Below are positions 36,701 through 61,541 of a DNA stretch of 64,000 nt, in pieces. The notes beneath the pieces are model-generated. The model made no database searches and was not told the origin of the DNA. It worked only from the letters and a program-made list of their open reading frames with translations. Each line of letters begins with the position of its first letter. Positions within the stretch are counted from its first letter, which is position 1. The stretch spans positions 172,959-236,958 of the forward strand of contig DF237025.1 of NCBI GenBank assembly GCA_000708835.1, given 5' to 3'. This DNA is from Klebsormidium nitens. Lineage: Eukaryota > Plantae > Klebsormidiophyceae. Both the position numbers and the translations under genes were made by a program.

Positions 36701-39700
36701 TCCGTTCTTTCGTTCTTCCGTTTTCCCTCTGATCTCCGTAACCGTTCCGCTCAGGCGGCAGACCGCTCGCTGGGCCAGAGCGCGCTGGCCCGCCTCCACA
36801 CGCTGGTGACGGTCGGCCTGGTGGCGGGTCTCCTGTTGGGCGCGCTCGCGCTCGCGGCCTTCTTCTCATACGCTATCGTGATGGAGACCAAGACGGGCGT
36901 CGAGGGGCTGAACGAGCAGGTGCAGCAGCACGGCAGCAAGTTCGCAGACTCCATGGGCGTGACCAAGGTGGGTCTGGTTATGGAGTTTGAGTTTTAGAGC
37001 TTTAACCGGGTTTCAGGGTCTTACTGTCCGGGTTCCGAGGGGTTTCGTCCTTCCGAGGCAGTGACAAATCAGGTTGGCTGGAAGCGCATCCAGAGGCGGA
37101 AAGTGGACAGGGAGCGTGTTTGTTGCCTGGCTGCATGCACATCAAGTTTCATGAGTCCTGGCGGTCGTTTCAGATTAATTCGGTTTCCGGACGGCTCACT
37201 TGTTTGGAAGCGTTTGCCCATTCGGAAGCAGATTGGTAGTCAAGCACCGAAAGCGCTGTTCTCAGGAGCAAACCCCAGCCATTGGCGACGGCAGCTTTTG
37301 TGTTAGCTCAGCAAACACCTGCAAGCTAAGACGGAACCGGTCTATCTTCTTGCTGTTTCATTGTCACTGGCCAAGCTTCTTATTCGCATGCTCCCACCTG
37401 TCACCTCTTCAGACCAGCAAACGTACTCACCAACAAGAAGCTCGGACGCAATCCCTGTAGTCCTGTAACATCTAAGAAACTGCTCCGCTATTCCTGGTGG
37501 TGGAGGTGACTATTCCTCCGTCTCGTCCGCAGTGGCTGCAGGAGAATGACGTCCCGGGGCTCGTGAACCGGACGTACGAAAAGGTACTGGGGACCGCCAA
37601 GGAGCAGTTCGACGATCTGGTTGTGTAAGCTTTTTAACGCCGACGGCGTATTCTCCTCCCTCTTTTCTCAGGGGGCACACCTAAATCTTGCAACGTGCAG
37701 CAAACCTTGGATCCTTCCTCTCAGCTCCGTACCGATCATCGACCGCATCGTGCCCCTCCTTCTGTTCCTAAGAAATTTCTTGCTTTGGCCGGCCGTTATT
37801 GCTCCGCTTGAAGACGAGTCGCTGTATTATCTGCGAATTGTCGGATGGGGGAAAGAGCGCGGATGTCAGAAGCTCGATTAACTGGTTGTTTTATCATCAT
37901 GGTAGCACATTAAATTGCCTGGGGCGATCTCTTTGTGTCGCTCGACGTCGGCCAAAAACGTAATGGTTTCCTTGCGAGTCGATGACAGCGTGGCGTTGCT
38001 TGACCCGCTGACCTTCTTAGAAGTCTGCACCAAAATCCGGTGGATACCTCAACGCTTCCTCGACCTCTGACGCTGGCGTGGCCGCTGCTCACGACTTAAG
38101 AAGATTTCAACTCATGAAGAGTCAGCGCAATGAAGGAAGAGCAGAACTTGTTGTACATCTGGACCCAAATGCCACCTGCTCCACTGGCACATCCGCACAT
38201 ACCCTACCCCCCTCACAAACCTCAACCGTTCCAGGGCCTCGGCATTACCCTACGTTGCGCTTACACTTCGTATAGAATCGATCGCCAATATCGGCTAACC
38301 GAAACCTGATCTGCAGGCGGTACAACTTGACGGAGGTGGTGGACACTGTTCGCGACAGTTTGGATCTCTACTTTGCAAAGGGGGAGCAGGGCGAGGGCGC
38401 GGGGAACGGGACGCTCGTGGCGACCAGGCCCGCTTCGGAGTTAGCTGAACGAGTCCAGGTAATGCAAGACTTGTCGCCTTTTCTCTTCGCGCCACTTTGC
38501 AACAGCCGTGCTGGGGTTTGATTGGTGCTAATATGCTTTGAGATTCACATGCATTCGTGAAGTTGCGGATCTGCCAGAATCCCCGGATTGGTGGGATCCA
38601 ACTTCTCAGAACTTTTGCAGAAGTGCTGGAAAACCGAGCAGTGCTTTACCTTTACTTTGGACCTTTGCCAAATACAACCAGACCTGATCGCCCTTCTTCG
38701 CGACGGCCTAGAATGAAACAGGCAATCTGTCGTGATACCCACCGCCCAATTTCTTTAGGAGTTGAATTTTTTTGCCACTGCTCAGGAATCAATGCTGCCT
38801 CCCCCTGATTCTCGAGCCCTTTGTCCCCTTATGTGTCCCCTTATCTGGCCCCATATCTCTGAACTTCATCACACGTTTGAATCTAGGAATGGCACCGCGA
38901 CTGAGCAGCCTTCCCCTTTGCAGGTCATTAAAGCAAATCTCATCGCGTATCAGGTAAGGCCCCTCAGTAGCCTATGCTGATTTGGAGGCTATCCTAAAGG
39001 GCCGCGTATTTCCTGTATGTGACGGTCAGGAGAGCGACGGCCGTAAGACGTGTGTCATTTGCAGTCCTCCGCAGGCTGCGCTTTGATTCACCTCACATCA
39101 AAGCAGACAAATGGCTCTACTAAGACCAGTCTTTGTGACAGGTTTGCGATTGACCAGTCGGGAAATGAAGAGCTCATTGTACTTACATGGAGTCAGTCAG
39201 TAGTTTGTCTTGGACTTGCCCCTCGCTCTCCTTTCGTGACCTGTCTGAGCAGCGTTTTGCGTCCTTCTGGAATATCCGAATCACGAAAAACGTCTGTGGG
39301 GAGCCGTCTATCGCAAACGCCCTCGCTAGCGAGAAGCTGACAACACGTGGCAGATTGCCTACTGGTTGATGCAGTTTCACGACGCGGTACGAGAGATCCA
39401 AGCCGTCGTGGCTCTGGGGCCAGTGACCAAGCTGCCGGTGTCGGCAGGTGAGGAGAGCAGCAGATCTGGATCAATCGTTGTTTGAGAATCTCTTGTTGTC
39501 TGGCTCAAGTCTTCTTATAAGCATATTTGGAGCGCTTTCGCCTTCGAAACCTGAATGAGTCCAAAAAAGAAAACTGAATGAATGCCAATACTTTACGACG
39601 ATGAACACGTGTGACTCTTTACCGGTTTCGATAAGAACTTACGGTACCGGGCTCTCTTGAGTCCCGCTTCCAAATAGGTACTTGCTTGGACCAAAACGGT

Positions 39701-42700
39701 CCCCCTTCTTGGATCCTTTACAAACAAAATCCTGACACGTTTCACCAACTTAGAGTGTTTCATTCTGAGAATCTGAAGGGTGTAATGGACAGTCATTCGT
39801 TTCCCTAGGTTCTGGTTTCTATTGTTCCGTTTCTGTGCAACTTTCGCCCTGCGTGTTTGCTGTTGACTTCCAAAGTCCTAGTCTATCTTCGCCAGCGGTC
39901 TTTTTGTTAGAAGTTGAGGAGTCGTTTCGAAACCAGGCTTCGCTAAACCTCTAGTCGTTCCAGTGTACTCGATCCTTGTGATAATCCAATCTTACCACAC
40001 TCTCTTATCGATTGCGATGTCGCCTTGTTTTATGCTTGTCACAGAGAAACTGCGCGAGTACCTGCAAATCGCGCAGAGCACTGGCGCTGCCGCTCTCCGG
40101 CTCATTGTTGGACAGGGATCCAACATGCTCACGGGGTCAGTCTCCCGTCCTTCTCTTTCTCAAAAACAAAGCAGGCGACGCTTGCCAGAGGATAGGAACA
40201 ACGAGCGTCGTTTGCTGAGAGTTATATATTTTTTCTTTTGTTAAATGTTTAGCCGACTCTCTTCTAGCTTTGCACATGCTAATAGTAGAAGCGCTGATGC
40301 TTGTATAAGCGGTTTTTCGTCCGCTGTCTAGCAAAGTCACAGACTATATGCTGCAAACACATGAGGAGCGGAGGAGGGAGATGCGGCAGTGAAAGAGGCC
40401 AGGCAAAGCAAAACGCATTTCCGTCTAGTCCTCGAGCTGCAACAAGACCGAACCGCATCCTTCTGAAGAAGGCGGCGAGGTGACCGCACTCTGCGTTGCG
40501 ACCCGCGAGTCTATGAGACCGCAAATCCTACCGCTCTTATCAGAACAGATTACTATTATCAAGCTTCGATTTCGGTGTCCAAATACTGTGAACCCAAAGG
40601 CCTAGTTAAAGATACGCCACCAAAAGTCAAGAAACCTGAAATCCTCAAGTCCCCTTCGGTCGTGTGCAGCGGCGCGACGTTGTTCGTGACGAGCTTCCGT
40701 ATGGTCCTGAGCGGCGCGTTGGGCTTCGTCAACTTCACGCTCCAGGCCGGCTTCTTCCTTACCATCCTGTATGCGCTGCTGTCCGCGGGTGAGCGTCTCA
40801 TCTCGAAACCAATTCGGACAAACCCGTTTCTCCACTTTGGCAAAATTTGGGGGATACGGGTTTGGCGTCAATCGACAGCTGCTGGAATCCTTCAGTGTCC
40901 CATTTGTGGTCCGAATAGCCCTTTGAGTGTAGGGCTTTAACATTCCCTTATCCAAGCAATCAAAAGTACAAATTTTTTCATCAGTTCAAGGACGGCAATG
41001 AGCTGGCTTGAGTTCTGGCAACGCAAGACCTCACATGAAAAAACGAGCCGTGCTTTGCCTTTGCTGGTCGCAGAGGAGGGCGCCGCCTCGAGTCAGCTCC
41101 TGGGACTGCTCCCCGTCTCGGACAAGCAGAAAGCCAAGATCAGCGACGCGCTTTTCACGGCAGTAAGGCTCTCGTCTCTTGGGAAAACGAGCCCCCCGTT
41201 TCACCATGAGGCTGAGATGTTGCTGCGGTCAAAGTTGGGCATGTTTAGACGCGGAAGCGACCAATCGTTTCAGTAAATCTAAGCTCGACTGTGCGCCTCT
41301 GCTTAGGTTTAACGACGGACGACCTCTTTCCCTTTCGCCTAGAAAGGGCGCCCCAATCTCATCCGCCAAATAGAAACCTTCCCTTCGTCGGCCTTGCTAA
41401 GGGCTGCGCTTGCTGCTTCGTCCGATCCTGCCTCTCGTTCCTTAGCGTTTGCTTCTTCTCCATTTTCGCATCGACCGCGCTTCTCTCTAAACAATGATGA
41501 CCATCGTCCTGTTCTTGGTTACCGGGGCTTGAGAACAACCATCGGAACGTCTGAACCATTCCCAAGTCAGTTACTCGTAAGCCATTCGAGCCTGACAAGG
41601 TCGTACGCGCGCTGCCCGTGCAGATCAGCGGCGTGTTGTTGTGCTCCGTCAAGCTGGCCCTCTTCCAGACCGCCTTCACGTGGCTCCTCTTCCGGGCCTT
41701 CCACATCCACTTCCTGTGAGCCGCATCGCTCTTAGCGCTCTCCAAAAGGTCTCTGCGTGAGTCTTTTGCTGCATGAAAGTCAACAATAGGGGTCGATCGG
41801 CCGAGTCGGCTTCTCCTCGTTAGACGGAAGAGACATTCTCTTAGGGAGATCAAATGATTGGATTCCTTCAAAACGATGAAATTTTCTCCAGGACGAGGCA
41901 GAGACCTCTTGTCGGCAGTTCCGAGTTAGCGCACATTTCCTTCTTCCGGTACTACGGGTACGTCATCAAATCACATAGTGAATGAAGCGCTGGACGCAAG
42001 CCTGAGACGCTGTTCCCACTGTCGCTGAATCATCCGTCTCTAAATCCTCATTTCTAAATCCCTTTCTAAATCATACCGTTTCTGAACCATACCGTTTCTG
42101 GAACAGGTACACATGCACGTTGCTCGCTGGGTTAAACGCTGTGCTTCCGCTCTTGCCCAACTGGCTGGTGAGCTGCCTCTTCCTTCCTTACGCCGTGATT
42201 ACATGAAATCAGCGATTGCTGACCTTGAATCTCACGGAAAAATGCAGGCCCCCTCCTTCTCTGCGGGTCGAAACCCAGACAGCCATATGAGGAGTCGATG
42301 TTGACGGTCCAAATTCCGAAGGCAAAAGGCCAAGATTCGTTCTCGCGCATGATCTTCAGTTCTCACAAGAGGTGCCTCGCTACTGGTTGCTTCCCCGTTT
42401 GTCGCTTCTCAGTTGCTCCCTTTTCTGTGGCAGTCCTCTCTTCCCGCGGGGCTGCAACTAGTCGCCCGGGGAAATTACGTCGGGGGCGTCCTTCTTGTCG
42501 TTGCGCATAACCTGGTGAGCGGCGGCCGGAGTCAAGTACTAAAAATCATTACATACCTTCCTAGATCAGAATTTCAATCCCAGAAGCTCTGCTTCATAAA
42601 GCTCCACGATAGATTGTGGACTCTCCGTAACCTAGGGCCTGAAAGTCGTTACTCGCTGACGTTTCAATTGCAAATGTTCGTGTTTCTTGGAAGCTTCCGA

Positions 42701-44150
42701 ACACGTCACTTTGGCGCCAGTTTTTTTCGGAGATGACCGACTCCCCCCCGACTTCTCTCTCCCAGAAACATCTTCAAACCTGTCACTGTCACTGATTCTG
42801 CACGCCGAGCGCTACTTCTCGCAGACAAGCGGACGTGAGCGGCTCAGGTTCTGATCGTAAAAGCGCACCAGTATCGCCGCATCTGCTCTGAGCACGCATA
42901 AGCACACGGGTATTGTGCTCGTTAGCGGGCGTGCTCTCAATATCATCGTCACAAGTCCGCTTTGTACCGATTCGCGGACGCCTAGCCCTTATTTTGTCGT
43001 CCCTTCCTGAAGGCTTTCTTTAACATCAAAAAGTGCATATAGACCAAGTTCGTTGTAACGGACAGCATCTGAGACTGAGCCACGTGTCCGGCAAACTTTG
43101 AGACACGTGTCCGGCTGTGCAGATGTTGGGTCAAGGCTCGGACATCATTTACAGCGACACTGTCCGGGCTCCCAGCCATATCTGACGGGTGAGAGCAGCT
43201 AGGGCAGAACTCTGGACCGCGCCACCGGAACCAGGTTTTGCCGCAGCCTAATCAGCAGCAGCCGCTCTCGAAGTTTGGATCGTATTGAAAACCTGATTGT
43301 TTGATTGTGAAGCACGGACACTCGCTTCAAGGAGGGTTCGACTGCATCCACGTTGCAGTCACCAATTGAATAGAAACTTGCTCGTCCCTTCTCAATCGGG
43401 CGGCGTCTGATTGTCTTGGGCCTTCTAGATCTCGCTGCACCGCGAAGCAGCACCACTTGCGTTTTTCGACGAGCCCAAATAGCGGGCTTTTGGTGCAAGA
43501 AATTGCTGCAAATGTCCCCGAAAGATGCACCGGGAGAGAGTGCGTAGATGAGGAGCTGCAGCACAAGAAGGTGCAAGGAATGTTGAAAAGCTTAAGGACT
43601 GGCCGCTTTTCACGCCTTGCAGGCTTGAGCGTTGTGGGTGGGATGTCGGTCTTCAGCTCGCCGATCCAGGTAATGCAGAAAGTAACGATGGTGTCTAGCT
43701 TTTATCCGTTCCTTGGAATTCGAAATATTCCCCTCCTCTAGTGGTAATCATGAACAATCACCTGCCATCCACTACGGAACAGTCCCAAAGTTCTGCTTCA
43801 ACAGAAACGCTCCTTGACTTTCTTTGAGAATCTCATTACCGCGACCGCGAGCGCACGAGTACTGAGATTGTGCTTTGGTTCCGTCAGAACAGTCTCGCCG
43901 GCTCTGCATTGGGATATGATCTTCTGATGCAACACGCAGGCGGCCGTCGCATTCAGGGTCGCGTTGTCAGAATTTAAACAATTGTTCGCATCCGCAACAT
44001 GTTTAGTTGACGTCTACTTGCTCCTTCTGACAGAATCTTTTGTATTCTGCTCGACAGGGAGCGATCTTCGGGCCTTTGATTGTGACGATCTTTGTAGCGC
44101 TTCGCAACCTCTATTCCGAGTTCGTAGGCAATCTCGGAACTGGTGCGTGA
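33756..44150 (+). CDS. TMEM245/AI-2E-family multi-pass membrane protein (about 675 aa if repaired), with two apparent frameshifts; 18 exons: 33756-33832, 34462-34641, 35198-35463, 35883-36095, 36755-36967, 37533-37624, 38317-38458, 38924-38953, 39375-39447, 40045-40135, 40670-40788, 41074-41162, 41624-41715, 42107-42167, 42434-42514, 43123-43188, 43623-43669, 44058-44150
   Basis: Motifs DPYLRMAMYN, NDFLQPLLWAGLC, ISGVLLCSVKLALFQTAFTWLLFRAFHIHFLY, PYLTGLSVVGG, GAIFGPLIVTIFVALRNLYSEF match the recalled plant/animal TMEM245 family. All junctions are phase-consistent except exons 2 and 16. Confidence 0.82.
36440..36790 (+). repeat. Four tandem copies of the 3' splice site and start of TMEM245-like exon 5
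   Basis: CAG|GCGGCAGACCGC..CTGGGCCAGAGCG occurs with AG at 36559-60, 36638-39 and 36753-54 (the productive one), with a decayed copy at 36450-51. Confidence 0.9.
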
Positions 44151-45329
44151 CATCAAATTTCGAGTGCTTCCGACGCGGTAACCTGCATGCTCGATCGGGT
44201 AAACATGGCCGAATCTTACGAGACGGTCGAGGCGCATGGTAAGGTGCACTGCATGCGATCCTTTCATGCACATTGATGACCCATTGATGACAAGTTGTGT
44301 TTGCAAAATGCATCCCCTTATCCAGCCTCGTCCCTTCGAAACGAATGCAGCTGAAGCGAGGGACCTAGGCTAGGGACTCGAAGAGTACAATTCTATGTAA
44401 TTTTGGACCACATCCCCATACTGCATGCGACATGTCTGCAACCAACGCACAAGCGCAAGTCGTCTTCGTATTAGCTGACTTTCGTATAATGCACCGTACA
44501 TTTATGCTAGCCTCAAGCTCAGCATGATCCATAGCCAGCTGGGCCTTGCACTAAGCTTCCTTGACCGTGGTGTGTGAAGGCGGAGAGCTTGAAGAACTGG
44601 GACCAGCAGCTTCACGTGGAGAACGCCACTGATATGCAAAGTCAGCATGCACAATTAAGACCCATGGGCTCACGATACGCCAACACCGCATGATTGATGG
44701 GGGAAATGATTACTATACAGTTAGAGTCATTTGAACGTGACCAGACATGCACTTCAATGCAGCTGAAATCAATTGGCGTCTATTCAACCCCTGTGATTCA
44801 TATTCAACTTACGCATAGGACGCAAGGCCTGCCAGTGCTTTGAGCACCAGAGCAGCTAGCCGCCTATTTACGAGCGCCATGATCTGCTGGGAGACGAGAT
44901 TGCGTTCAGTTTACAAAGCTGGCTGTACTGTTGCAAATGCGAGCTGACCAGTCTGGAGTCTGGGTAGACGGTTTGAACGTTGCCAGATTTGCCAGGAGAG
45001 CAGAAACCAGGTTTCAACATAACCCGGCTTCTGAGTTTGAGCTTGAAAACCGTCAGCAGAACGTCGCCGGCGAGACGTTTGACACAGTCGCGTGACCTCG
45101 TGACCCAAACGAATGTCTGGGACGAGTATTCCGTAACTCCCGTTGCAAGCGATGGATGCCCCTGGTACGTTGACCAGCACCACAAGAAACGGGTTAAGGA
45201 ACCAGGCAACGACTCGGCCACCGTCTAGATTCAGAATCAGACTCAGAGCTCCAAAACTTGTGGCAAAAGTGCATCATTTCTTCAGCTGCTCAAATTTCGA
45301 GGGGGCGCCAATCGTGCTTGGCAGTGCAA

Positions 45330-46745
45330 ATGGCTTCTAAGAGGCAAAAACTGTCTGACAGCATGGAAGAAACTGCTCGAGAAGAGAGGAATGACGAAGT
45401 TGAGCCTGGAGTCAGCGGCAGCATTGTGCCTACAGGGCCCGCCTGCTATGATTTTGCTTTTGCGTACGGCAACCCCTGCTTCAGCGACAGGATTATGTGG
45501 CTTCGGAAGTTGGAGACATTTGTTGAAGAGCAGACGCTGGTGGAAGAGGACGTGCCGATCAACAGCGCCATTCTTGCGTCCAAGAGTTCAGTGTTTCTGA
45601 ACATGCTTTCCAGCGGCATGGCAGAGTCCGACAAAGATCGTCCAGTCATCATCAGGATGAGCAGCAATGACGAGAAGGGAGCTTTCCTGAGGATGCTGCG
45701 ATTTGTCTACACAGGCGAGATTACACTTTCGAGCCTCATTGGTAGGGATCGTGCAGAGGAGTTTTTGGAGCTGCTAGCGGTTGCCGACAAGTATGCGGTC
45801 AGCAGCTTGGTCAGCGCTGTCAGTGAGGTTTGGGAGAAGCTGCTCGACGATGTCGATGTGCTGCAATTTGCCGCTTTCTCTCTCCCTGAGACGTATACAT
45901 CGCTGTACCGAGAGGTGAAAAACCTGGAGGAAAAAGCTCAGGAAGCTCTCGTTCGGAGGTTCAAGGGTGTTGGCACCTGGGATGATCTGGAATTCATGAA
46001 AGTGGGCTTAGAGTCAGTCAGTTTTTTGCTGGGAAAGGAGGAGCTTGAAGCGGAATCAGAAGAGAAAGTCTTCGAGCAGACTCTAAAGTGGGTTAGAAAT
46101 ACTTTCAAGACCACTGAAGATCGGCAGACCGCCGTGTCGAAGCTGTGTGCACATCTGCGGTTTGCACAAATGTCGGCCGACTTTATCGAGACCCAAGTAG
46201 CAAATGCTCCCGAGATGGACTCTCTCCCCGCGCAACGTCTGATAAGAGAAGGTCTTGGTTTTGCTGCATCTTCCTTGTCGAGAAAGGCTTCGATGACGGA
46301 TAGCCGGTTTCAAAAGCGAGGAGGCTTTGATTTTAGGATTTATTTCAGAGCCCTCCTAGCCGAAGATGCTGAAGTGGAAAGCCAACAGGTGTCGCCTGCT
46401 ATTGTGAACCACAATTGGAAGTGGCACCTGATGGTGAAAAGGATGGACCGGGAAGAAGAACCAAGCACTGTTGGGCTCTTCTTGGGTGCATATGAGACCT
46501 ATGAGGAGCAATTTGCACAACATTCTCTCCGTGTTCAAATGAGCTTTTCTGCAAAGTCAGTGGCAGAAGGTGAATGGGTTTCACTTGAGAAGCCCCAACT
46601 GCACCTGTTTGAATCTGAGGAGAAAGACTGGGGTTATCCAAACATCTTTGGAGATTCTTGGGAAGCAATATGTAGCAACAAGAAGTGGGTGGGAGCATCT
46701 GGCGAGATCACCGTTAGGGTTGAGGCGACTATCTTGTCAAACTAA
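45330..46745 (+). CDS. Intronless BTB/POZ-BACK-MATH-like protein (POB1/LRB-related CUL3 adaptor family), about 471 aa
   Basis: Single ORF with FAFAYGNPCFSDR, INSAILASKSSVFLNMLSSGMAES (BTB), ADKYAV, ESEEKVFEQTLKWV and HLRF (BACK), and WHLMVKR...VGLFL...WGYPNIF (MATH-like). The ORF track starts at a GTG (45258); the first ATG is 45330. Confidence 0.85.
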   Translation: MASKRQKLSDSMEETAREERNDEVEPGVSGSIVPTGPACYDFAFAYGNPCFSDRIMWLRKLETFVEEQTLVEEDVPINSAILASKSSVFLNMLSSGMAESDKDRPVIIRMSSNDEKGAFLRMLRFVYTGEITLSSLIGRDRAEEFLELLAVADKYAVSSLVSAVSEVWEKLLDDVDVLQFAAFSLPETYTSLYREVKNLEEKAQEALVRRFKGVGTWDDLEFMKVGLESVSFLLGKEELEAESEEKVFEQTLKWVRNTFKTTEDRQTAVSKLCAHLRFAQMSADFIETQVANAPEMDSLPAQRLIREGLGFAASSLSRKASMTDSRFQKRGGFDFRIYFRALLAEDAEVESQQVSPAIVNHNWKWHLMVKRMDREEEPSTVGLFLGAYETYEEQFAQHSLRVQMSFSAKSVAEGEWVSLEKPQLHLFESEEKDWGYPNIFGDSWEAICSNKKWVGASGEITVRVEATILSN

Positions 46746-48046: not shown

Positions 48047-51000
48047 TCATGTTCCATTTGGACCGGTAGGCTCCATCGTGCTGAATACCTCCTCGTGGTA
48101 GCGGCCCGATGACGCCATCGCGCCGAATCTTTTGGGTCCTGAGATACGAACAGAAAGTGATTACTAACACTGACGTCATTAGCTGAGACCAATCTTCCGC
48201 CGGCCCCCAGTTTTACAACCAGTAGTGCACCCTTGCTTGTAATCAGCTTTGCTTATGCAGTCCACTCATGGCAACACGGTTCCAAACCTTTGCATTCGTA
48301 GACCTTGACTTGACTTGATTCGCTTGAAGCTAGCATCAGAGAAGCAGGGTAGATTCGGAGACGACCGGCAACTCCAGAATATAAGTGGCTTGGTCATTTC
48401 AGCACTTTGCAGCAGACTCCGCGGCGACCGCCCTTTGCCACATCTGACCGGGATCTCACCCAGAAGAAATCGAAACGCGGCCGCGACTCCGTCGGCCATG
48501 CGCGAGCTCCCGCAGACGTACACGTGGCAGTTTGGGTTCTCCAAAAGAGGAGCGAGACGCTCCGCGCACTGAATGAGCAGCAAGCCAATTGTCAGGGCAA
48601 GTTGGTACGATGCGCCGTTGCCGCCTGTGTCACGATTCGACGGCAAAGTTTTGAGTAAACTCTGCAAACGCCTGCAGCTGTGAAGACTCTTTGCGTGCCA
48701 GTGTCATGGGCTGACCCTTGCAACCGGTTCGCATTCTCGATAAGTTTCTTGATACTGTAGAGAAACCTTATATTCATACTCAAGAGGAGGACGTCCTGGC
48801 TGGGTTTTACCGGCTCTGTATCGGCCCTTTGGGTTACACGGCCCTCCGGATAGAAATTTGGTTACAAAGCCGTTAACCAGGTCGAGTTATTCGCGGACTT
48901 CCTTTCTCACCTGCCGCAGTTTGTCCTGCACGTACTCTTTGGGGTGATTCCGGTCCCTGGAAAAAGCCACCGAGCGGAACGACAGCGCGCCTGCCGCGGC
49001 CGCGGTATTGCACTCTTTTCTGCGGAGGTTTCCAAAAAACGCAATTCTCAAAGGGCGTTCGATGCAGGGCTTGATCCTTTGTAAACGGTCGGCTGAGATG
49101 TTTGATGTTCTGTCTGGCAACGATCCTTCACATTCTTCAGAAATAAACGCAGAGAGTTTGCGGTCGAATCCTGATAGAAAAGCGTTCGAACGACTTTCAC
49201 GCCTACGATAGAATGAAATTCAGATAATCCTGATTCTCGATTTGGCTGACATTCGTTCGATGGCATCATCCGCGTGAAACCTTTCAAAGACACCACGGCC
49301 ATGAAGAAATTACGCCCTCCGTCACTTCGTTCTTGGAAGCCTGATTTCAATGAATACGGGTTACGACTAACCCGTTCTGGTTAAAGGGACGCCTCACCTG
49401 GATAGGTCCTCTTCTTCGCTGCGGCAGCCGTACAGAAGCGCGCAAGGACCGACGCCCCGTGCCCGGTTGGCTAGAACCGACCGCTGCAGCAGGAACCCTC
49501 GAAGGGGAGCAAACCCTGTGCCGGCCGCGACCATAATAACCGGGTGCTGGGAGTTCAAAGGTAGCTTGAAGCTGGACACCTGTCAAAGCGAGAAGACGGG
49601 AAGTCAGCCGTTGCCTTTTGAGAAGACACGAGCAGATTGAAGCCCGAGAAATAGGTTGCGGAGCGCTTACCTCAAAATCTCCTAACCACGGGGGGAGTAC
49701 GAGTTCCGCTACTAGGAATGTGGGCTGTTGAGAGTTGCGTGATACTCGCCGGAGAGCTGAACGGATTCGAAAGGCAGGAAATCTATGCAATCAGCCTCGA
49801 AAGTTTGAACGGGGACTCAAAATTACGAATGTAAGTTCAACGGTGAAAATGTCCTCGCATACGTTGGAATTGAACGCCGGTAGACACATCCACGACCGGT
49901 GTTTTCCCGGATCACTGACAAACCCAGAAGCAACAGTCGCTAACCCAAACTAGTATCTTGACGGCGTCTCCAAAACCTGGGTCGTTATCGTCCTTGCCCC
50001 GTTTTTAAGGGGTGGCCGGAGGTGCTTCCTAGCCTTCTTTTCTCCTTACGATCTTCCAAGTTGGGTTCATAGTCTCTTCAGCGTGCTTCTTTAGCACATA
50101 ACTATCTCCGTTCCGCCACCCTGCTTAGTCATGGGCCAACGAGAGTCGCCTGCCCTCACCTTCAGAATCTGCATTCTGACGTCATCTCCGGGTTGTACGC
50201 CTTCCGTCAGATAGCCCGAGCAGCTCCCGGTTCGTCTGCCGCCGCCGGGGGCGCTCCACGCCGTCTTTCCGCACAGTAAATGAGCCTGCGACACGTGGCG
50301 CTAGCAAAAATATACCCTCTTTCCACTCGATCCTTTTCTCGGCAATTCGTACCACAGCTTTTCTCAAGCGTGGTACACGGGACGCAAGCCTTACTCGCAG
50401 CGATAGAGATCCTGGGCCGCTTTGACATCGTCACCAATCCGTAAGACTGGACTCTGAGAGAACTAAACAGCAAAAAAAGAAGAGAAAACAAAAGTTGGCT
50501 TTCTCACTTCTCCCGGAGAAGCGAGCGCGCTGCTCGCGACGCTGTAGTGGCGCGCGTGGATCGGCGGCGCGAGCTGTAGGAACACTTCCACGGGCAGGTT
50601 TTGGGAGAGGGATGCGAAGAGGTCGAAGATGTCGAGCCACCTGCGAGCAACTCAAATCAGTCTGTGTCTCATTCCACTGAAACTTCCAAGGGGGATTGTT
50701 TCAAGCGCGAACGATTGCGACAGTGTTTGGACAGCCGCCAATGAAAGCTTCAAGGGAAAAGGACAGGTGATGTTTGCGAGGAGAAGGTTGGAAGATTTGA
50801 CTGTTCTTGCGAGTCAGATGGGTTCTTGAGGACCATAACGGTTGCTGGACAATGGTGGATGAGATCGGTTCCGGTCTACAGAGCCGGTACTTTTACCACC
50901 CTTCCTGGCACTTCCGTCGAATCACAGCCCCTGAGTTGAAGCTCGACGAGGGCTTCTTTGCGTACCTCGGTATCCATCCTTTATCCGACAAACCTTTGGA

Positions 51001-54000
51001 TACCACGTTCTAAAGTGATGAAGTCCTCTTGCTAATCTGACGACTCTTTCGGCCGCAAAGCAGACAGAAAAGACGGAAGTACTCTACGAGACTACTCGTC
51101 GATCAGTACGCTATCTCGTCTTTTGGGATCTGGAGACATGCCTGTTGTTTGCAGATCGTAGAGAATCAAAAATACCTTGTCTGGCGGCTGTCGTTCCAAG
51201 TGTCAAACAGCTGTTCGTCGCCCCCAAGCTCGGCGAGAATGTCAATCTGAACTTTTTGTCCCGCATACTGCGAAAGGAGCGCACTTTATACATCAGCACA
51301 CGTAGGGAAGCCGCTGTTAATCACAGATCCTGACCTAAGAGTTTTATAATCCGGGATTATGCGGAAAGTTCCAGATTTAATCGGCCAGCCAGCTGATCGA
51401 GGCAACCCAAGATGCAGGTCGGCACAGAATAATAATGAGATCTGTCATCCGGGTAAAAGATACACAGAGACCTTGCCCCCATCCATTCCGCTGTCAAAAG
51501 CCATGCAACCCCTGCTATCTAGACGTGAAACTCTTCCTGACGCAAGTTCATTCCAGAATGTACTTTCTACACAAAGACATTTCGTTTCAAGGCGCTGACG
51601 GACTAGACACATTGCCAAAGACGAAATGCTGGAATATCCATCACTTGCTTCTTAATGGTTTCTTTGCATTCGGTTGCTTACCTTTGAGAGGGGCGCAAGC
51701 GCCTCAAAGCGGACGGGCGCAAGAAGTGCCACGTGTCTCGTGAGCAAGTTCCAGAGGGTGTTTGGCAAGGGGTACGGTGGAGCCCCGCCCATCGGACCGT
51801 CCACAAAGAGCGGCTCCAGATCGAACGGCTGGGAGAGCGGGATGCTAAAGTGCGCGGCAAAGCGCGCGAGCGCTACGCGGTCCACGTGGTTGTTGGTGGG
51901 CAGTACGCTGACGTGATCACCTGGATGCGAGCACCGTGTCAGCTGATGATTGCTGATAACGGTTGTTTGGCTCACACGTTATGAATCGCTTATGGATCTC
52001 TGAGGGTTCTGCACAGCATTAGACGTCCGTGGGAACTGTCAAGCTGTCGTTTTGCACGGGGAGGAGACCCTCTTCGCGCTGAATAGTAACCCAGTTATAC
52101 GGTCTCTCGTATTGTACCTACCACAAGGTCTCACCCCTTCCTAAAAAAGCAAGGAGACTGTTAAAATCATGGTCTATTTCGTACCAGTCACAAGAGTGAT
52201 CCATTTGCATCCCAGCGTCCGTCGGTTTGCACGCGGGGCATTTGAGCAGGTCACGGCAAGTCATGGCTTGGTCACAGCGTAACCTGGGAAGCTAGAAGCT
52301 GACCTGGCTCGTACAAGGCCTCCGGAGCGCCCGAGAGATCCAGCCCGATGAGTTTGCTGGAGCGGCCTTCCGGACTCTTTGGGAGGAGTTCCTCGCACGT
52401 CAGCACTCGCGCCGTCAGGAAGCCGTCGGCCACGGGCGCGATCCGTTGTGAACCTGGCGGAGAGGAGTTTTGGGGTTTCAGAGTCAGGAAAGCTTGAAGT
52501 ATTTCAAAGGAAAAAAACGTTTTAGATTCTGTAGAAGCGAACATGTCACTTTTGTACGTTGCGAAGAGGTAACAAGCATATTGAGAGATCAGGAGACAAA
52601 CCGGCTGTCAAATCGGTTACATAAGAAGGTGACAAGCCGACCGCGACGGGCAGGCGCTGTGCAAGCCTAACGAGCTCGAGCTCTCGAGAAAGTGCTCACA
52701 CATAAGGATATTACCGATGTTGTTATCTCGACTGACTGGCAAGCGGCTTCAATGAGTGGCCATATGACGTAGAAGGGAACGCAACTCGATATTGCTTGCC
52801 TCTTCTTTTCACCAGCTTCTCGTGAGTTTTGAGGGTGCTGATAGTGTCAAAGGTGCTTTCTAACTGCAGTGAGTTGGCCCTCAGGCTTTCCTCGTGATCA
52901 TATCTTTCAGAACTAAAACCAAGAATAAGTCAGGAACCAAAAGAAGCGTAGGTCAGCTCTTACCGGCCAGAGGCACTATTTGGTAGCGGCACGTGAAAGA
53001 CGGATTGGGGGGCGACCGCTCCTCCAACTGGGCGAGGACGCAACTGGTCGCCCTCTCGTACTTAGGCTGCAACCGCACAGGGGTGTGATTAACCCAAGCA
53101 GGTTAACCGTTGGGTTTAAGCGTGGTCTAACATCACGTCTAGGAAAGCTTTGGAAACCAGCTAGTCCCTTAGAAAACGTCATTTCGGTCCTCAAGATTGA
53201 CGTTCACGATTTGAAGACAACGTCAATTCGAGGGGCGTTCTCGGTTCAGTGGTCTCTGAGCTTAGCACTTTCGCTTGGTTGAAAAGATCTGAAGAAGCGA
53301 CATAAGCATTATATCGTAGGTGAAAACTATTTAGTAACAGGAAAACGTTCTTCTTGTGCGCAAAGCACGTGATACGAACAAACTTGGATTCCGTCTGGCA
53401 CCAGTCCAGCATATGCATCTTCTTCGGTGGTTCGAGATCAACAACAATTGAGGGAGGAGGCCGAGATACGACGCCACTGGAACAATAGACGCAAACTTGT
53501 GGCGTCCCAGCAAACCGAATGCCTTTATAAACCAGCGGCAAAGCGTCGACCTACAAAACCAACACCGCATTCGTAGAGAAAGTACTCACCTTGACCGCCG
53601 ATGCAAAGCTCTCCACCGTGCGTCTCATCCAGTGAGAGAAGGCAGAGTCTCGATCGCCCATCTGATCCCCTCTGCCCACTGACGTCAACGACGCGCCTCC
53701 TGCAACGGGTGACAAAGTTCTGGAACGAAGCCTACCTCCGATCAGCTTTTCCAATTACGGTGATACCTTTCTTTGAAAGGTGTACGCTTTTGATTGGGTG
53801 GGATCGGCAGAATCAGTTTTACTGGAGGCCACGTAGCAACAGAACAACTCGGAAATCGCCCGTTTACAAATTTTCAGTTCCAGTGCATGTAGCAGAGGGA
53901 CCAGAAGTCGATTACCTGCCGCGCGCGCGGCCGCGTGCACGGTGTCCGCGGCCGCGCAGAAGCGCGGGTACGCGCGGCTGCCGAGCCCAAAGACGGAGAA

Positions 54001-57000
54001 CCTCAGCCCAGCGACAGGGGACTTTGGGCTGCCCCCGTGAGCAGCAGCCCAGTCGAGAAACCTGCGAGAAGTGTTATCAAATAATCATTATAATCAAGAA
54101 CTTCGAGAAACCTGCGAGACGGACACAGCCTTAGAGACCGGGAATTGAACCGGTCGCCGAATGCACTGGGCCGTGGGGCGTGTGGTGCTCGTTATCGGGG
54201 GTTTGTCGATCCTCGTTCGCGCGAGCAATCGAGGCGCTAACCGGGCCTGGTTAAGGGCGGTTAAAAAGGCTTCAACACGGTGGAAAGGAGTACAGGTTTG
54301 GACCTGTCAACTGGCGTCGAAGTCGCCACCTGGTACCTCGCACTGGGAGCTGAAGCTTTTTGAAACAGATGATACTTCTAACCAGTCAAACGATTAAGGC
54401 AGTCCGCTTTGTAAGTCTGATCAGAACGTGACCGTGTCTTCAATACGACCGCTTTGAAGGTCTTTTGTCTTCTCGTGGTCAATTGAACTGCTAGCAAAAA
54501 GTTGAAAAGGCTTACTTCAGTGCTGACGTCGGCAGTGATCCCGAACCGCAAGTGGAGATCAGCAGCAATAGCAGGTTGGCGGAAGCCAAGTCAACGGTCG
54601 AGAACTCCTCGATGCTGATTGTGGTGACATCGAACGCGCTTCCCAGCGCGCTACTTGTCTGCAACAAACAATCACAAAGTAAGCAGCACAATCGTCAGAG
54701 TAATAAGATCCCTTGTGCACGAGCGTGGCGAGAATTTAAGATCAGGCGAAGCTTCTCAAGTGGGTTGATATCATACGGAATTCGTTGGTGATTGCACTCA
54801 AGGAGACGGGCACCGATCAGCTATCTGAGAGCGGTTAGCAGATCTGACGAAAAGCAGGCTGAGCGCTGGGCAAGCACTTTCCTAGCACTTCTGAGCGATC
54901 ATACGCATGAGCTACAGGCAGAAAAGAACGGAAAGTGCGCTGATCTGGCAGCTGATCACAATGGGGAAAACATCCACCTAATAAAATAACCATCAAGCAA
55001 GCAGAAGGCGCGTCTTGTTTCCAACCTCACTTCGCTGATTACATTTCACCGAAGACGCTCTCTGCGCCTCAACAAGGAAACGAATGTCCATCTCACTCTC
55101 AGGGCGAACTCGCGCGCGGTCCCCGTCATGCTCGCGTACATCACCACGGCGCGCGGCCGCGCGGCCGCGACGCGCGCCTTGCAGCGCCCCAGGAAGCGGC
55201 ACACGTACGGGTTCAGGAACGCGGGGCGCAACGGGGCCCCTGGCGAGTACTCAAACCTCCCCCCGAACCACTCGCGAGCGTAGACTTTGAATTTCGGCGA
55301 TCGAATGTAAGCAGGCTGGAGAGTGTACTCGGTCGCTTTCGACAGGCCGAGATAGCACTTGCTCGTGGACGCAGCGACCGGGGGAATGATCCACTTCCAG
55401 TTGGTGGGCGTGTAGCCCCGCGCGGCCTTTTCGTCCTGTAAGGCGGCATAATATGGCTGGACTTTTGGATTCTGAGATTTTGGAAGTCCCGGTTTTGAGG
55501 TTTTGGAGCGGGCCAAAGAGATCATCTACCCGCTCTTGATTCGCTAGGAGTGGGCTCTTGATTGATCGCCAGATGCTCTGAAAGTTGCGGCTCGTGGAAA
55601 TTTTCGTCTTTGAGGCCGTCGAGCAAACGACGGTCGTGGTCGACAGGCATCGCTTAGTCAAACGGCTGAAAAGCTGTTTTGAGTTTATCAGGGGGTGAAT
55701 GGCTTGCCGTCGATGGAACGCTTGTACCTTGTTCCCTGAAGCAAAGCTAGAAAAGAGAGGCAATAATGGTTTTTTAAAGTGACATCGGCTGGTTTGGATG
55801 AGCTACCCAGCCCGAGATCCTCACTCGGAGGTTGTCTGGAATCTGTAAAGTGCCCACTACCATCAATCGGTGAAAGATTGTAAGTGCTTTGCTCGAGTTG
55901 CACGACAACAGCACAACGGCTAGCCCGACGGAGGTTGCTTAATCGAGACTGAATAAGGTTGGGATTCATTTCGCTCATACCCGCCACTTCGAGACTTCGA
56001 CCACCTCAAAAGTTTCCACCCAAGCCATGTGAGGTTCCATCAGGGCGTTCAAACTCGAAACATTCGTCTAAGGTCAAAAGCTCAGCAGCTGATCTGCTCT
56101 TTGGCACTTGAAACAGCACCCTAAGTACGTTGCGATCGTCTTAATCGCGTGTAAACTCGAATCGTCAAATGTTTACTGGGCTTACATGGTGCCACTTCCA
56201 GAACTGCTCCATCAGCGTGTGGTGGTCTGTCATTGCGATGCCGGCTCTTTGCCAGCTGTATAAGATCGCCTGCAGAGCGACCGAAAGAGTTGAGTCAGCA
56301 ACGGAAGCATTTGTATATCTTGGTGTTAAAGAGCGTGCGGTGGCATAGAGCCAAGTAGCTTTTGGAAATGGATTGGGTTTCTTTCCATTCCCGCCGCGTG
56401 ATGACTTTTGATTCGTCTGGTCAATATTCCAGTCCACTTCTGGAACATCCTGAAGCATCTGTTCGCGGTTGAACCGTAGCCGCGTACTCGAGACTCTGTC
56501 GTTTCGAGGCGTCCCGACAAGTGAAGGCTTCTCTCTCGCCTTTCCAGGTACGGACCAGCAACCTTGGCGAAGTTACCAGCCTGCTTGGCTGGTTGGTGAT
56601 TGCAACCCCATCAATTACTCGCTAAACAGGGCCCCTTTCTGAACCCCTTCTGCGGGCTTGAATTCGGCTGCCTTTGCGGCTTGAATTCGGCTGCCTTTGC
56701 GGCTTGAAGGCCACCGCTTCTCCCCATGTGGGCACAAATCTCGCCGTAAGAGCTTCCGCATTTGAGTGCCTGTTGAAGCGTTTGATGTACAAACGAGCCA
56801 GCCGGAGGACTCACGATCCCTGCTGGCAGAATTGCCACGTGTCCTCACCTGGTTGAGCGCCAGGAGCGCCGCGTCCTTCCACAGGCTAGAGTTGTCGTTA
56901 ACTGCTAACCCCAGATGGTTTGCGATAATTGGCAACACGTTGTAGCGCGACTCGTCGCTCAGGTTGCGAATGATCTCCGTGTCCGCGTACCTGGGTTAAG

Positions 57001-60000
57001 ATATAACCGAGGGTTGCAAACCGGCCAGATTTACGCGCGAGCGCACTAGGTCGAGGCGTCTTATAGACTGATGATGAGTTGTTTACAGGGCAAGTAGATC
57101 TTCAGAGCTTTGATGATTTTCGGGTTAAGGCCTATCTCGTGCAACAGAAAAGCCAAAAGTACGAAACCCTTGATGACGAGAAGAACAAATATGTTGTGCT
57201 GATTCAATTCTCCAGACTTGAAGTCACCCACGTCATCGCCAACGTCAAAGAGCAGATTGCGGAATGAGAAACCACAGGGTTAAGGCAAACCCACCAGCCA
57301 GTGAACGGCGCCCCGGTGTACTTCAGCCCCCCGAGCGTGAGCTGCATGTCTGAAACGCAGGGGATTCCGTACCAGCGGAGCCCCAGGCCCCCAAACCATG
57401 GGTGGTTAGGGTGGGTTAGCGGCACCAGGGGCACGTACTGGGGGGACACCTCGAACAGCTCAGGTTTTTTGTCTGGGCTCGGTTGGAGGACAAGGGGCAA
57501 GATGTCGAAATTGGTGCCTGCAGGGGGAAAGGCAGCCGTTAGGAAGGTCTTTTTCTAGCGCCGGCACTGGGCGCTTTTCTGTTCCTTTGGGAGCGATTTT
57601 GTGAAGAGCGTAGTGTAATCCACGCAACGCCTGACGTCAGCTTTGGGGACAGTTCCCTCAAAACATTTGGTTGTGTCGCTGCAAACCTTCAAACGCAATT
57701 TCGCTCGCGGACCGATCTATTGTGTGCCTCAAGGTCTAACGCGCTCTCCACCCGGAGCTTCGGCAGTATCTCTGCAATACTGAGTCCTGACCGAACCTGG
57801 CGGAAGGAAGCGTCTGTGAGCGCTTTTGCCCCGTTAAACTGTGATCAAAAGGCGTGCTCGCAAGGAAAACTGCGCGGGTGGTTGAACGAAGCAGAGAGGG
57901 CTGGCCATGCTCTGCGGACAATCCCCATACATGTACAGAATGCAGAGCTCAGCTTTTTCATTGCTGGTGATCCTACAGATGCAAAACTTCCAAAAGTGGC
58001 ACCAGTATCCAACAAACGTTTGGGCCCCGCACCCATCATTCATGCTGAATGACTCTTTGTCAGGGGGGTGAGAGTCCATAGCCGTGACGTCACCTTCGCC
58101 CTTCCAGCCGAAATGCCGCGTCAACATCTCGGTGAATGCCAGCTCGGAGGGATCCCCCTTGACCTCCATATCCGGTTGCCGATAGCCTGTAAGTAACAAC
58201 CGTTCATCGTTTAAGACTTGTATGTGCCTATCCAGTCTATCAACGGCAGTACGAAGAAAAGCTACCACTGTTGCTAGACTTACAAGCAAAAAACAAAATA
58301 CATTGGTAGTTCAAACGGAGGCCTTCAATAAAATGGACGCTTCCATGACCGGAGGAAACGTTATCTAAGCATACACTCGAGTTCCAACTGTTTCTTGAAA
58401 GTGAGCATTCTCAAGGGCCCTCGGGTCCCTCTGCGGGCCTCTGAGCCAAGAAGGGTCTCAAATGGCCCTCAGATGGGGTACCCACTGAGTGGGCTGGGCC
58501 GATTCAGATTCTTGTATCAAGTCAGTCCTGTGTCTCCGACCAGATCAAGGACCAAACCAGACGTTTGGGGCTGTAAACCCACCTGCAAACCGCATCAGCT
58601 GCAAATTCCACACCCGCGGCCCCCCCTGCTTCGTCAGCGGATGCTCCGGACGGAAGACGGTGACGTAAACCTCGGCGGCCCCGCTGCTCACGGCGAGGTC
58701 CATCATCTCCAGACACGCCTCGTTCATGCCCTGGCATAATGACGCCACGTGTGTTGCGTCAGCAACGGTGTGAGATCCAAGTGAAGTCTGACGTGCAGTC
58801 GCCCAGTGGCCGTGCGTGTGACGTCAGCAGGCTGGTACGGCTCTACCAACGACGTTTAATACGTGGTGGAAGGCTCACTTAGGCGACGTCGTTGGTCGTC
58901 TGATCAGCCCAAAAGCACGGTAGTAGCTTCGAACAACCCACGACTGATGTCTATCCAACGAGTTCATTACACGTCAACGAGAAAGTAATTTCGCTTGGAA
59001 CTAGTAAGACCCCTGTGAGCCCACGTTTTTGGGCCGATATGTCCGTGCAGCACTCCGTTTGATCTGAACCGATTTCCTAGAAGTGAAACCGTGCATTCAG
59101 ACGCATCGGGCGGTCTGGGTTGGGACTGAAGCAAGCGAACACAGGAAACGATTTATCTTGACGCTGGGTTGTGCAATTGATGCCGTCTGTCTAATCGTAC
59201 CTCTGCTGTCGACACGTGGCGCTTGTCTAGCAGCCGCAGAGTGCTCCAGTACTTCCGGTTGGAGCATTTGGGCGCGTTCCTCCAGGCAACACGCACACCT
59301 GAGGATGAGACGAATCTTGAATGAAGAAGACTGCATGAAATCGACGGCTTTTCGTAAACAACCAGTGACGTCTCTAAGGAAGAGTTGGATTTTCAAGAAA
59401 ATCATGCTTGGTTGGATCCATCTGAGCACCTTGAGAACGGAAGATGGGGCAAGGCGGCTTCCCAAATCGGCAACCGACGTCCGATGCAGGGGTTTCGAAA
59501 GCGAACCGAAAGAGGAAAAACTTCTTTGATTGAAGGTCCTGTGTGCATCATTACAGACGACTATTGGCAGACGCCGAGAGAGAAAAGGAAAGACTCAGCT
59601 TTATAGAATATTGGAGAGGGTTCCTCTTGGGAGACTTTACAGTTCCGTCACTTTCGGAGGGAATGAGAAGCCTCCGAGGGCGAGAGCAGGGTGTTTAACA
59701 CCTCACCATGCTCCAGTTCGTCCGTCGTGTGTGAATAGGTCCCCTCCTTGTCGATGCTGGCAAGGATCTCAAGCACTCTTCGGGCCTTGACGTCCTTCGG
59801 GGACTGCTTCTCGTGGTGGTACAGTTCCTAGACCCGGGCAGGAAGAGCTGTTAGATACTCAATACACAGTACTTTAAACTACTACAGGAAGAGCGCCCTA
59901 GAGGGAGCACCCTCTATCAAAGAGCAGTGCAAGTGAAGTTGGGAAGTTCATTCTTGCCAGCCTGATTACTCGGAAGGTGAGCCCCGAGGCGCGGGCCGCG

Positions 60001-61541
60001 ACTGAGCTGGTCACGGTCAGCATGAGTCAACATAACCGTTGCACGAGTACTATGACAGCTTTCAGAGTTTTGTCAAAGGCCAGACACTGTCATAATGCAT
60101 TGCCAGTGGGCACGTCACAGGCTGCTACATGTCAAACAAACAGAAGGCTCCTGGGTAGTCAGCCAAAACCTTGCATGTGGAAGTTGGACTGTCAATGTAG
60201 TGATCTTCTAATCTCGTAATTCTGGTCAAAGGTTGAAGTTTTGAGGGGGCGCGCCATACTGGCTCTGGCAACTTGACATTCTCAGAAGTAGTGTGCTTCC
60301 AGAATGAATCTAGAAAGAATCTACTCTACTTTCGTCAGCCAGCAGAAAAGCGTGAAAAGCATCCGGCAAGGATTACTCCTGGTTTACGAGCCACTAACCT
60401 GGAATTCTAGCGCCTCGCAGACGAGCTTCTCCTTCGGCGTCTCGAGCAGGTCAACGACTGGCTTGCAGCCAGACGAACAGACTGCAGGGTTCTTTCCATG
60501 AACAAAACCTGCATAAACATGATTATTGCACTCTTAACTTCGTGTTCCTCAAGTGGGCTCTAGCCAGCAATATCCAAACCTTCTGCTTGGTAAACGAGTG
60601 CGCTGAACCAGTTAGCAACCAGGTTTTCTTTCTGGTCGCTCTTTTGAAAGATGGAAGAATATGAAAGACCTGCTTGGAGCAATTGATAAGGGGTTGTTAA
60701 CACTTAAGGGTGCTGATTTTTCGAAGCGGACTTGAAGGCTTTGGTTGAGAGGGGAGGCTATCCTTTGCTGCTGCCAAACAGAGCCTCGGCAGATGCTTGA
60801 ATCAGCAAATCAGCAAGGAGTGCCGCTTACAATTCAGACTGCTACTGCATTATTGATGCACCAAGGCAGACCGCAAGGGTTCTCAAATCAACAGAACCAA
60901 CTTCTTCTGAATCACAGGCTTTGCGGTGCATCCCACTCTAGTTTTGGCCGGCACCAACTCAGTCAGCTTTTGGTGAGTCCCCTCTGCTTCAGACACTCAC
61001 CAGGCTCTGGAATCATGTCAATATCTTCAAGTCTCTGATGCAACTCCCTTAAACATCTAGTCTTTGCAGGCAAGAGCTTGACAGTGACTGCTCCCACAAT
61101 ATCAGAGATTACACTCTTGGCTTCTTTGCTTACCTTTGACATGGTCCCTGGATGTCACTCAACAAACATGATCTGTTGTAACTCCTCCCAACACTTCGGC
61201 TTAGCAAGAAAAACCTTGCTCATCTTAAGCAGGCCCTCTTTCAAGAATGATGAGAGGACGTCTTTGACAGCCAGCTTGCAGTCTTTCTTTCGCTTATTGA
61301 TGGGGTATTTTTGCACATCTTAGCACGCCTCACCTGGATAGGGTGTAACTGTGACAGTCCCGTGCTTGAAAGGGCAGCTTGGTGCGTCCCATGCTGGCCT
61401 CTCATCGTCGCTTTTCTCCCAGCCAGCTTGATGACGACACTTCTCGGTATCCAATTTTGGCTCCTTCTCACTGCTGTCATCAACAGCGGGCAACTCCGCT
61501 GATATCCGGGGTCTTCCAAAGCAATTCGCAAATGGACCCAT
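48047..61541 (-). CDS. NOS: Full-length nitric oxide synthase (oxygenase + CaM-binding linker + FMN/FAD/NADPH reductase), about 1099 aa; 23 exons: 61541-61334, 60508-60399, 59827-59707, 59298-59201, 58730-58583, 58186-58094, 57517-57295, 56990-56849, 56269-56186, 55435-55097, 54658-54516, 54061-53916, 53699-53590, 53066-52964, 52453-52304, 51920-51682, 51267-51176, 50640-50508, 50285-50160, 49579-49398, 49019-48911, 48568-48460, 48138-48047
   Basis: Heme-thiolate AWRNAPKCSNRKYW, RVWNLQLMRFAGY, FDILPL, LRWYGIPCVSDM, substrate Glu in WYADTEIIRN, DHH, WKWIIPP. Flavodoxin MYASMTGTA and FSVFGLGSRAYPRFC, FAD RHYSVASS, NADPH MVAAGTGFAPLRGF, FSR...KEYVQD, YVCG, RYHEEVF. All junctions GT-AG and phase-consistent (3300 nt). 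An in-frame TGA lies 9 nt upstream of the ATG. Confidence 0.95.

Follow-up and report, generated by a model that had tools for sequence, protein, structure and literature searches.

Does an alga of the plant lineage carry an intact nitric oxide synthase (NOS), and if so, how did it come by the gene? The question is raised by a minus-strand locus at positions 48047-61541 of a 64,000-nucleotide stretch of Klebsormidium nitens DNA, the window of this analysis. The original prediction, made from the letters of the DNA, described a complete animal-type NOS of 23 exons and about 1099 amino acids, and suspected that the gene might already have been described. We conclude, with a probability of about 0.9, that the locus is the nuclear gene KnNOS1 (KFL_000760350, GAQ81306.1) of K. 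nitens and that it encodes a full-length NOS. KnNOS1 is annotated in GenBank and was described in 2021 by Chatelain et al. (PMC8728061), who called the 1099-amino acid protein 'the standard model', so that the suspicion was justified and the find is correct, not new.

Many short open frames with NOS signatures (such as AWRNAPKC, GTGFAPLRGF and HVYVCGSS) lie on the minus strand from 48 to 61.5 kb. Pfam analysis of 10 exon-level frames detected NO_synthase in five (best 77.8 bits), NAD_binding_1 in two (one above and one just under the cut-off) and FAD_binding_1 in one (under the cut-off); the best-scoring exon matched the solved oxygenase domains of eNOS, nNOS and iNOS with up to 87 bits. Read through without splicing, the substrate-pocket exon gives ...GWW, and after splicing GWYADTEI. 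When one exon was compared by phmmer with a library of 1.84 billion representative sequences, the sole close match was a transcript fragment of K. subtile (95% identical), because KnNOS1 itself is not a representative in that library; the same search also recovered KnNOS2 of K. nitens and NOSs from Chlorokybus and Mesostigma.

The deposited protein GAQ81306.1 ("nitric oxide synthase [Klebsormidium nitens]", 1099 amino acids), retrieved through a word search seeded with a Chlorokybus NOS and labelled as a nitric oxide synthase in both NCBI and UniRef, served as the query in all full-length analyses. Its coding genomic record is scaffold DF237025.1 of assembly GCA_000708835.1. Codon-by-codon threading of this protein on the minus strand, with only GT/GC..AG introns permitted, gave a single solution at 100% residue identity, which identifies it as the product of the locus and bears out the predicted coordinates, exon number and length exactly. 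The 23 exons encode 1099 of the 1099 deposited residues with no difference. The coding sequence is 3300 nt including the stop, with an uninterrupted frame from the ATG at 61541 to the last stop base at 48047, and all 22 introns are GT-AG and measure 216-825 bp (Table 1). The G+C content is 0.62 in exons and 0.49 in introns.

Transcription and splicing were examined in public sequencing runs. In fifteen runs from six studies, about one-fifth to one-quarter of the words sampled from 55000-59400 are present, close to the fraction that is exonic. Four runs, each from a different study, were placed on 55000-60999, a comparison that covers introns 1-10 of the 22. Each run yielded one contig (1573-3571 nt) with zero exon mismatches, and each contig skips exactly 571, 408, 470, 396, 576, 304, 579 and 750 bases with CT..AC ends, corresponding to introns 2-9. 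At their overhangs the contigs agree with the start of exon 1 and the end of exon 11, consistent with introns 1 and 10. Since these contigs lack the introns, they were taken as transcripts. The junctions are thus supported for the first ten introns, and the absence of such transcripts, which the original prediction had named as grounds for its refutation, does not apply there. Short contigs with a depth of 2-3.6 were also found inside introns 9 and 7 (55496-55760 and 57015-57271) in two runs, one of them with G>A at 57232; these low-depth intronic contigs are unspliced pre-mRNA or DNA traces.

These data also bear on whether KnNOS1 could be a decaying or silent pseudogene, a step towards the absence of NOS in land plants. 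The sole argument for such decay is that land plants lack NOS, and we consider it highly improbable in view of the unbroken 3300-nt frame across 23 exons with canonical splice sites throughout, the spliced contigs in four studies (one of 3571 nt), the difference in G+C content between exons and introns, which is typical of a maintained coding sequence, and the K. subtile ortholog, whose transcript fragment is about 90% identical to KnNOS1 in protein. As far as sequence and RNA can tell, the pseudogene reading is rejected.

The four Pfam families by which the original prediction was to be checked were all found on the full KnNOS1 protein, with Flavodoxin_1, FAD_binding_1 and NAD_binding_1 all exceeding their cut-offs. 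Residues were compared by means of a 13-sequence MAFFT alignment and an alignment to structure 8t1j, a full-length NOS1 that is the closest solved relative of KnNOS1 (E=5e-141); by residue counting, the 8t1j chain was taken to follow rat nNOS numbering (heme Cys = 415). Rat nNOS Cys415, Gln478, Trp587, Glu592, Arg596, Trp676 and Trp678 are all matched in the 8t1j alignment. The proximal heme-thiolate ligand is Cys158, within WRNAPKC, which aligns with rat nNOS Cys415. The L-arginine pocket is kept (Gln223, Tyr309, Val314, Trp334, Tyr335 and Glu339), and Trp152 is also retained. At the pterin site, Arg342, Trp422 and Trp424 are kept and the position of nNOS Phe691 is occupied by Tyr. Asn343 stands at the position of nNOS Asp597, as does Asn in the invertebrate NOSs of Acanthaster and Cylas in the alignment; Asn is likewise found there in eNOS and bacterial NOS. 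The reductase motifs are kept as well (Arg880-H-Y-S, GTGFAP from Gly956, Cys1052 and the terminal aromatic Phe1088). The predicted presence of every catalytic motif therefore holds for the heme Cys, the arginine-binding Glu, Trp-x-Trp, RxYS, GTGxAP, CG and the C-terminal Phe, and does not extend to the zinc motif, which is Cys-X3-Cys, or to the N-terminal hook, which is missing.

KnNOS1 departs from animal NOS at several further positions. A two-residue insertion follows the PPV(A/S) stretch, the autoinhibitory insert is absent from the FMN (flavin mononucleotide) domain (12 residues compared with 50 in nNOS; query 571-584, chain 821-872), the short insert of the animal NADPH (reduced nicotinamide adenine dinucleotide phosphate) domain is missing, and the C-terminal tail beyond Phe1088 has only 11 residues. 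As read from the sequence, the layout is iNOS-like: a PDZ domain and an autoinhibitory insert are lacking and the C-terminal tail is short. The N-terminus is of algal type, with Cys-X3-Cys and no hook. The protein consists of an N-terminal heme-thiolate oxygenase domain (residues 95-455) joined by a linker (456-506) to a diflavin reductase with FMN, flavin adenine dinucleotide (FAD) and NADPH modules. Catalysis, dimerisation, pterin use and any calmodulin control are inferred. By homology, electrons would pass from NADPH through FAD and FMN to the heme of the other subunit of a dimer, and there L-arginine and O2 would be converted to citrulline and NO (EC 1.14.13.39). Myristoylation at the N-terminus was considered from the Met-Gly start, as in eNOS, and was dropped because Pro at position 3 departs from the usual myristoylation consensus.

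Several points weigh against the assignment of KnNOS1 as a working NOS. The zinc motif Cys80-SSG-Cys84 is atypical, with the spacing Cys-X3-Cys and not the animal Cys-X4-Cys; the hook, which in animals is a Gly-Ser-Ile/Val/Leu-Met/Leu stretch after the zinc motif, is absent from KnNOS1 in the alignment; and between Glu339 and Arg342 KnNOS1 is one residue shorter than animal NOS, a deletion common to other algal NOSs and one cyanobacterial NOS. The linker at residues 456-506 is short, basic and partly hydrophobic, and is conserved in streptophyte-alga NOSs, and its alignment to the nNOS calmodulin site is weak. The RNA comparison covers introns 1-10. Our literature search found no published enzyme activity of KnNOS1: two of the papers searched mention KnNOS, neither with activity data, and recombinant production was only planned in PMC8728061. 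All of the structural departures from animal NOS are common to other algal NOSs in the alignment, and PMC8728061 agrees on the hook, the tetrahydrobiopterin side-chain residues and the Cys-X3-Cys motif of KnNOS1.

On these grounds KnNOS1 might be an expressed NOS-like protein without NO-synthase function in vivo, performing other heme-oxygenase chemistry or showing mainly uncoupled superoxide/NADPH-oxidase activity, because the algal N-terminus could not hold tetrahydrobiopterin as animal NOS does. The altered zinc motif, the absence of the hook and the subsequent Gly-Ser motif, and the lack of activity data in the literature search speak for this. Against it, all residues of the substrate and heme pockets are kept, as is the Trp pair that stacks on the pterin, and OtNOS of Ostreococcus tauri, which is of the alga type, is a functional NO producer according to Foresi 2010 and Weisslocker-Schaetzel 2017, as cited in PMC8728061. 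We regard this alternative as unlikely, and favor a genuine NOS whose function would be assigned by its homology.

Among known NOSs, the sister of KnNOS1 on the tree is the NOS-globin paralog KnNOS2 (GAQ90485.1), which is about 45% identical over 877 residues and about 70% in the oxygenase part, and shares the algal features of KnNOS1; KnNOS2 has a C-terminal ankyrin and globin extension that KnNOS1 lacks (PMC8728061). The deposited model of KnNOS2 begins within the oxygenase domain, at the equivalent of KnNOS1 residue 225, and lacks both the heme-cysteine region and the start of the FMN domain; this gene model is probably truncated or mis-spliced. The NOSs of Chlorokybus atmophyticus and Mesostigma viride are 41-47% identical to KnNOS1 over their full length and share its Cys-X3-Cys, the one-residue deletion after Glu and the lack of an autoinhibitory insert; they carry ankyrin and globin extensions, whereas KnNOS1 has the plain four domains. 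OtNOS (Foresi et al. 2010), a full-length algal NOS outside the alignment made here, has the same domain order as KnNOS1 and 36% identity to it (PMC8728061), and unlike KnNOS1 has been biochemically characterised. Mammalian NOS1, NOS2 and NOS3 (8t1j, 1om4 and 1nod) have the architecture, cofactor sites and pocket residues of KnNOS1, with about 40% identity in the oxygenase domain. Animal features that are lacking or altered in KnNOS1 are the Cys-X4-Cys zinc site, the N-terminal hook and a clear calmodulin helix; NOS1 and NOS3 also carry an autoinhibitory insert of 40-50 residues and a longer C-terminal tail, which KnNOS1 does not. The nearest unnamed relative is a related, intron-poor NOS on the ENA metagenome contig ERZ26858540 (3001-7020), split into three called genes: a 616-amino acid oxygenase and FMN piece, followed by FAD and NAD pieces; it has no bearing on other streptophytes.

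The origin of the gene was addressed by maximum likelihood, on a tree built from 35 oxygenase domains (377 columns, LG+C20+F+G4). KnNOS1 pairs first with the fragment from K. subtile (support 100/98) and then with KnNOS2 (100/99), and the Klebsormidium NOSs share a clade with Mesostigma, two NOSs of Chlorokybus and the trebouxiophyte Apatococcus (98/91). A single clade (100/100) unites all NOSs of green algae, diatoms and dinoflagellates (23 rows), and the animal NOSs (6 rows) form a clade of their own (100/100) that does not include KnNOS1. The description 'animal-type' is therefore apt for the domain architecture and not for the ancestry. An approximately unbiased test gave p=0.06 for a clade of only the six streptophyte sequences, which is not a clear rejection. 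The NOS of Apatococcus lobatus is nested in the streptophyte-alga clade (98/91), a position that may reflect transfer or unresolved branching.

A foreign origin for KnNOS1, either as an assembly contaminant or by recent horizontal transfer from an animal or bacterium, could be argued from the patchy distribution of NOS in algae, from disagreement of the NOS tree with the species tree (PMC8728061), and from the presence of Apatococcus inside the streptophyte clade. It is very hard to reconcile with a gene that has 22 spliceosomal introns, lies on a 237-kb K. nitens scaffold beside intron-bearing eukaryotic genes, has counterparts in its own genome (a paralog) and in K. subtile (an ortholog), and is split from the animal and cyanobacterial clades at 100/100. 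The contaminant and animal-transfer readings are rejected on the scaffold context, the introns, the paralog and ortholog, and the tree.

Other features were noted in the window. The downstream neighbour (38047-46745, plus strand) encodes a protein of 1093 amino acids in which BTB and BACK domains are combined, unusually, with a weak match to AI-2E_transport; its last exon is a 515-amino acid open frame (45198-46742). A 277-amino acid open frame at 28509-29339 (minus strand) has HAT repeats (PRP39/Syf1/crooked-neck-like) and probably belongs, as one exon, to a gene for a pre-mRNA splicing factor. Open frames at 2273-3556 (plus strand, 428 amino acids) and 18668-19720 (plus strand, 351 amino acids) had no Pfam match and may be genes, remnants of transposons or chance frames. 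The BTB/BACK and HAT-repeat families are general eukaryotic families and not specific to land plants, so the claim that the NOS lies beside typical land-plant genes finds no support in these neighbours; it is also not needed, since identity with the deposited scaffold fixes the host. Base 64000 of the window is the end of scaffold DF237025.1 and lies 2459 bp upstream of the KnNOS1 ATG, and the far promoter region is therefore unassembled in this record.

Table 1. Domains of the KnNOS1 protein (residue numbers) and exons of its gene (positions in the window).
Feature	Location	Strand	Basis
NO_synthase (PF02898)	aa 95-455		Pfam, 396 bits, profile positions 2-357 of 362
Flavodoxin_1 (FMN)	aa 507-642		Pfam, 81 bits
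FAD_binding_1	aa 703-919		Pfam, 78 bits
NAD_binding_1 (NADPH)	aa 952-1061		Pfam, 58 bits
Coding region from the ATG through the stop (23 exons; 1099 codons + stop)	48047..61541	-	100% threading
Exon 1 (aa 1-69), start codon 61541-61539	61334..61541	-	threading; spliced-contig overhang matches
Exon 2 (aa 70-106), putative zinc motif Cys80-X3-Cys84 at 60465-60479	60399..60508	-	threading, alignment, spliced contigs
Exon 3 (aa 107-146)	59707..59827	-	threading, spliced contigs
Exon 4 (aa 147-179), WRNAPKC, heme-thiolate Cys158 (59264-59266)	59201..59298	-	Pfam, threading, spliced contigs, alignment
Exon 5 (aa 180-228), Gln223	58583..58730	-	Pfam, threading, spliced contigs
Exon 6 (aa 229-259)	58094..58186	-	threading, spliced contigs
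Exon 7 (aa 260-333), Tyr309, Val314, first two bases of Trp334	57295..57517	-	NO_synthase 77.8 bits; eNOS structures 87 bits; spliced contigs
Exon 8 (aa 334-381), Tyr335, Glu339 (Arg binding), Arg342, Asn343	56849..56990	-	threading, spliced contigs, alignments
Exon 9 (aa 382-409)	56186..56269	-	Pfam, threading, spliced contigs
Exon 10 (aa 410-522), oxygenase end (Trp422, Trp424), linker aa 456-506 (possible calmodulin site), FMN start	55097..55435	-	Pfam, threading, spliced contigs
Exon 11 (aa 523-569), FMN domain	54516..54658	-	threading; contig overhang matches its end
Exon 12 (aa 570-618), FMN domain, position of nNOS/eNOS autoinhibitory insert (absent)	53916..54061	-	threading, alignments
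Exon 13 (aa 619-655), FMN domain end	53590..53699	-	threading, Pfam
Exon 14 (aa 656-689), hinge	52964..53066	-	threading
Exon 15 (aa 690-739), FAD_binding_1 start	52304..52453	-	threading, Pfam
Exon 16 (aa 740-819), FAD_binding_1	51682..51920	-	Pfam, threading
Exon 17 (aa 820-849)	51176..51267	-	threading
Exon 18 (aa 850-894), FAD motif R880-H-Y-S	50508..50640	-	threading, residue positions
Exon 19 (aa 895-936), FAD_binding_1 end	50160..50285	-	threading, Pfam
Exon 20 (aa 937-996), NADPH motif GTGFAP from Gly956	49398..49579	-	Pfam, threading
Exon 21 (aa 997-1033)	48911..49019	-	threading
Exon 22 (aa 1034-1069), YVCGSS with Cys1052	48460..48568	-	Pfam, threading
Exon 23 (aa 1070-1099 + stop), RYHEEVF, FAD-stacking Phe1088, 11-residue tail	48047..48138	-	threading, alignment

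The original prediction placed the gene in a close relative of land plants and proposed that the enzyme was lost later. K. nitens is a streptophyte alga and belongs to an early-branching streptophyte class (Klebsormidiophyceae) that is not the sister group of land plants; land plants have their closest algal relatives in the Zygnematophyceae, according to PMC9915684. The proposed later loss fits the clade that KnNOS1 forms with the Chlorokybus and Mesostigma NOSs. The absence of NOS from land plants is established (Jeandroz et al. 2016), and descent followed by loss is the standard, already published view (Jeandroz et al. 2016; Santolini et al. 2017), both points as cited in PMC8728061. Reports of NOS in Cosmarium or Chaetosphaeridium could date the loss; a literature search for them gave nothing usable. 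Our data fit inheritance of KnNOS1 from a streptophyte ancestor and loss before land plants. More tentatively, KnNOS1 may belong to a streptophyte-wide NOS lineage (Klebsormidium, Chlorokybus, Mesostigma) from that ancestor and may be constitutively active, calmodulin-independent and non-animal in its mode of pterin binding; the gene would have been lost once on the land-plant stem, and Apatococcus would have acquired its copy from this lineage. Plant NO biology has long asked if a true NOS was ever present in the plant lineage and at what point it disappeared, and KnNOS1 is one of the main pieces of evidence; to this the present analysis adds an exact exon map, transcript evidence from four studies for introns 1-10, and a tree that places KnNOS1 with the NOSs of streptophyte algae, apart from those of animals.

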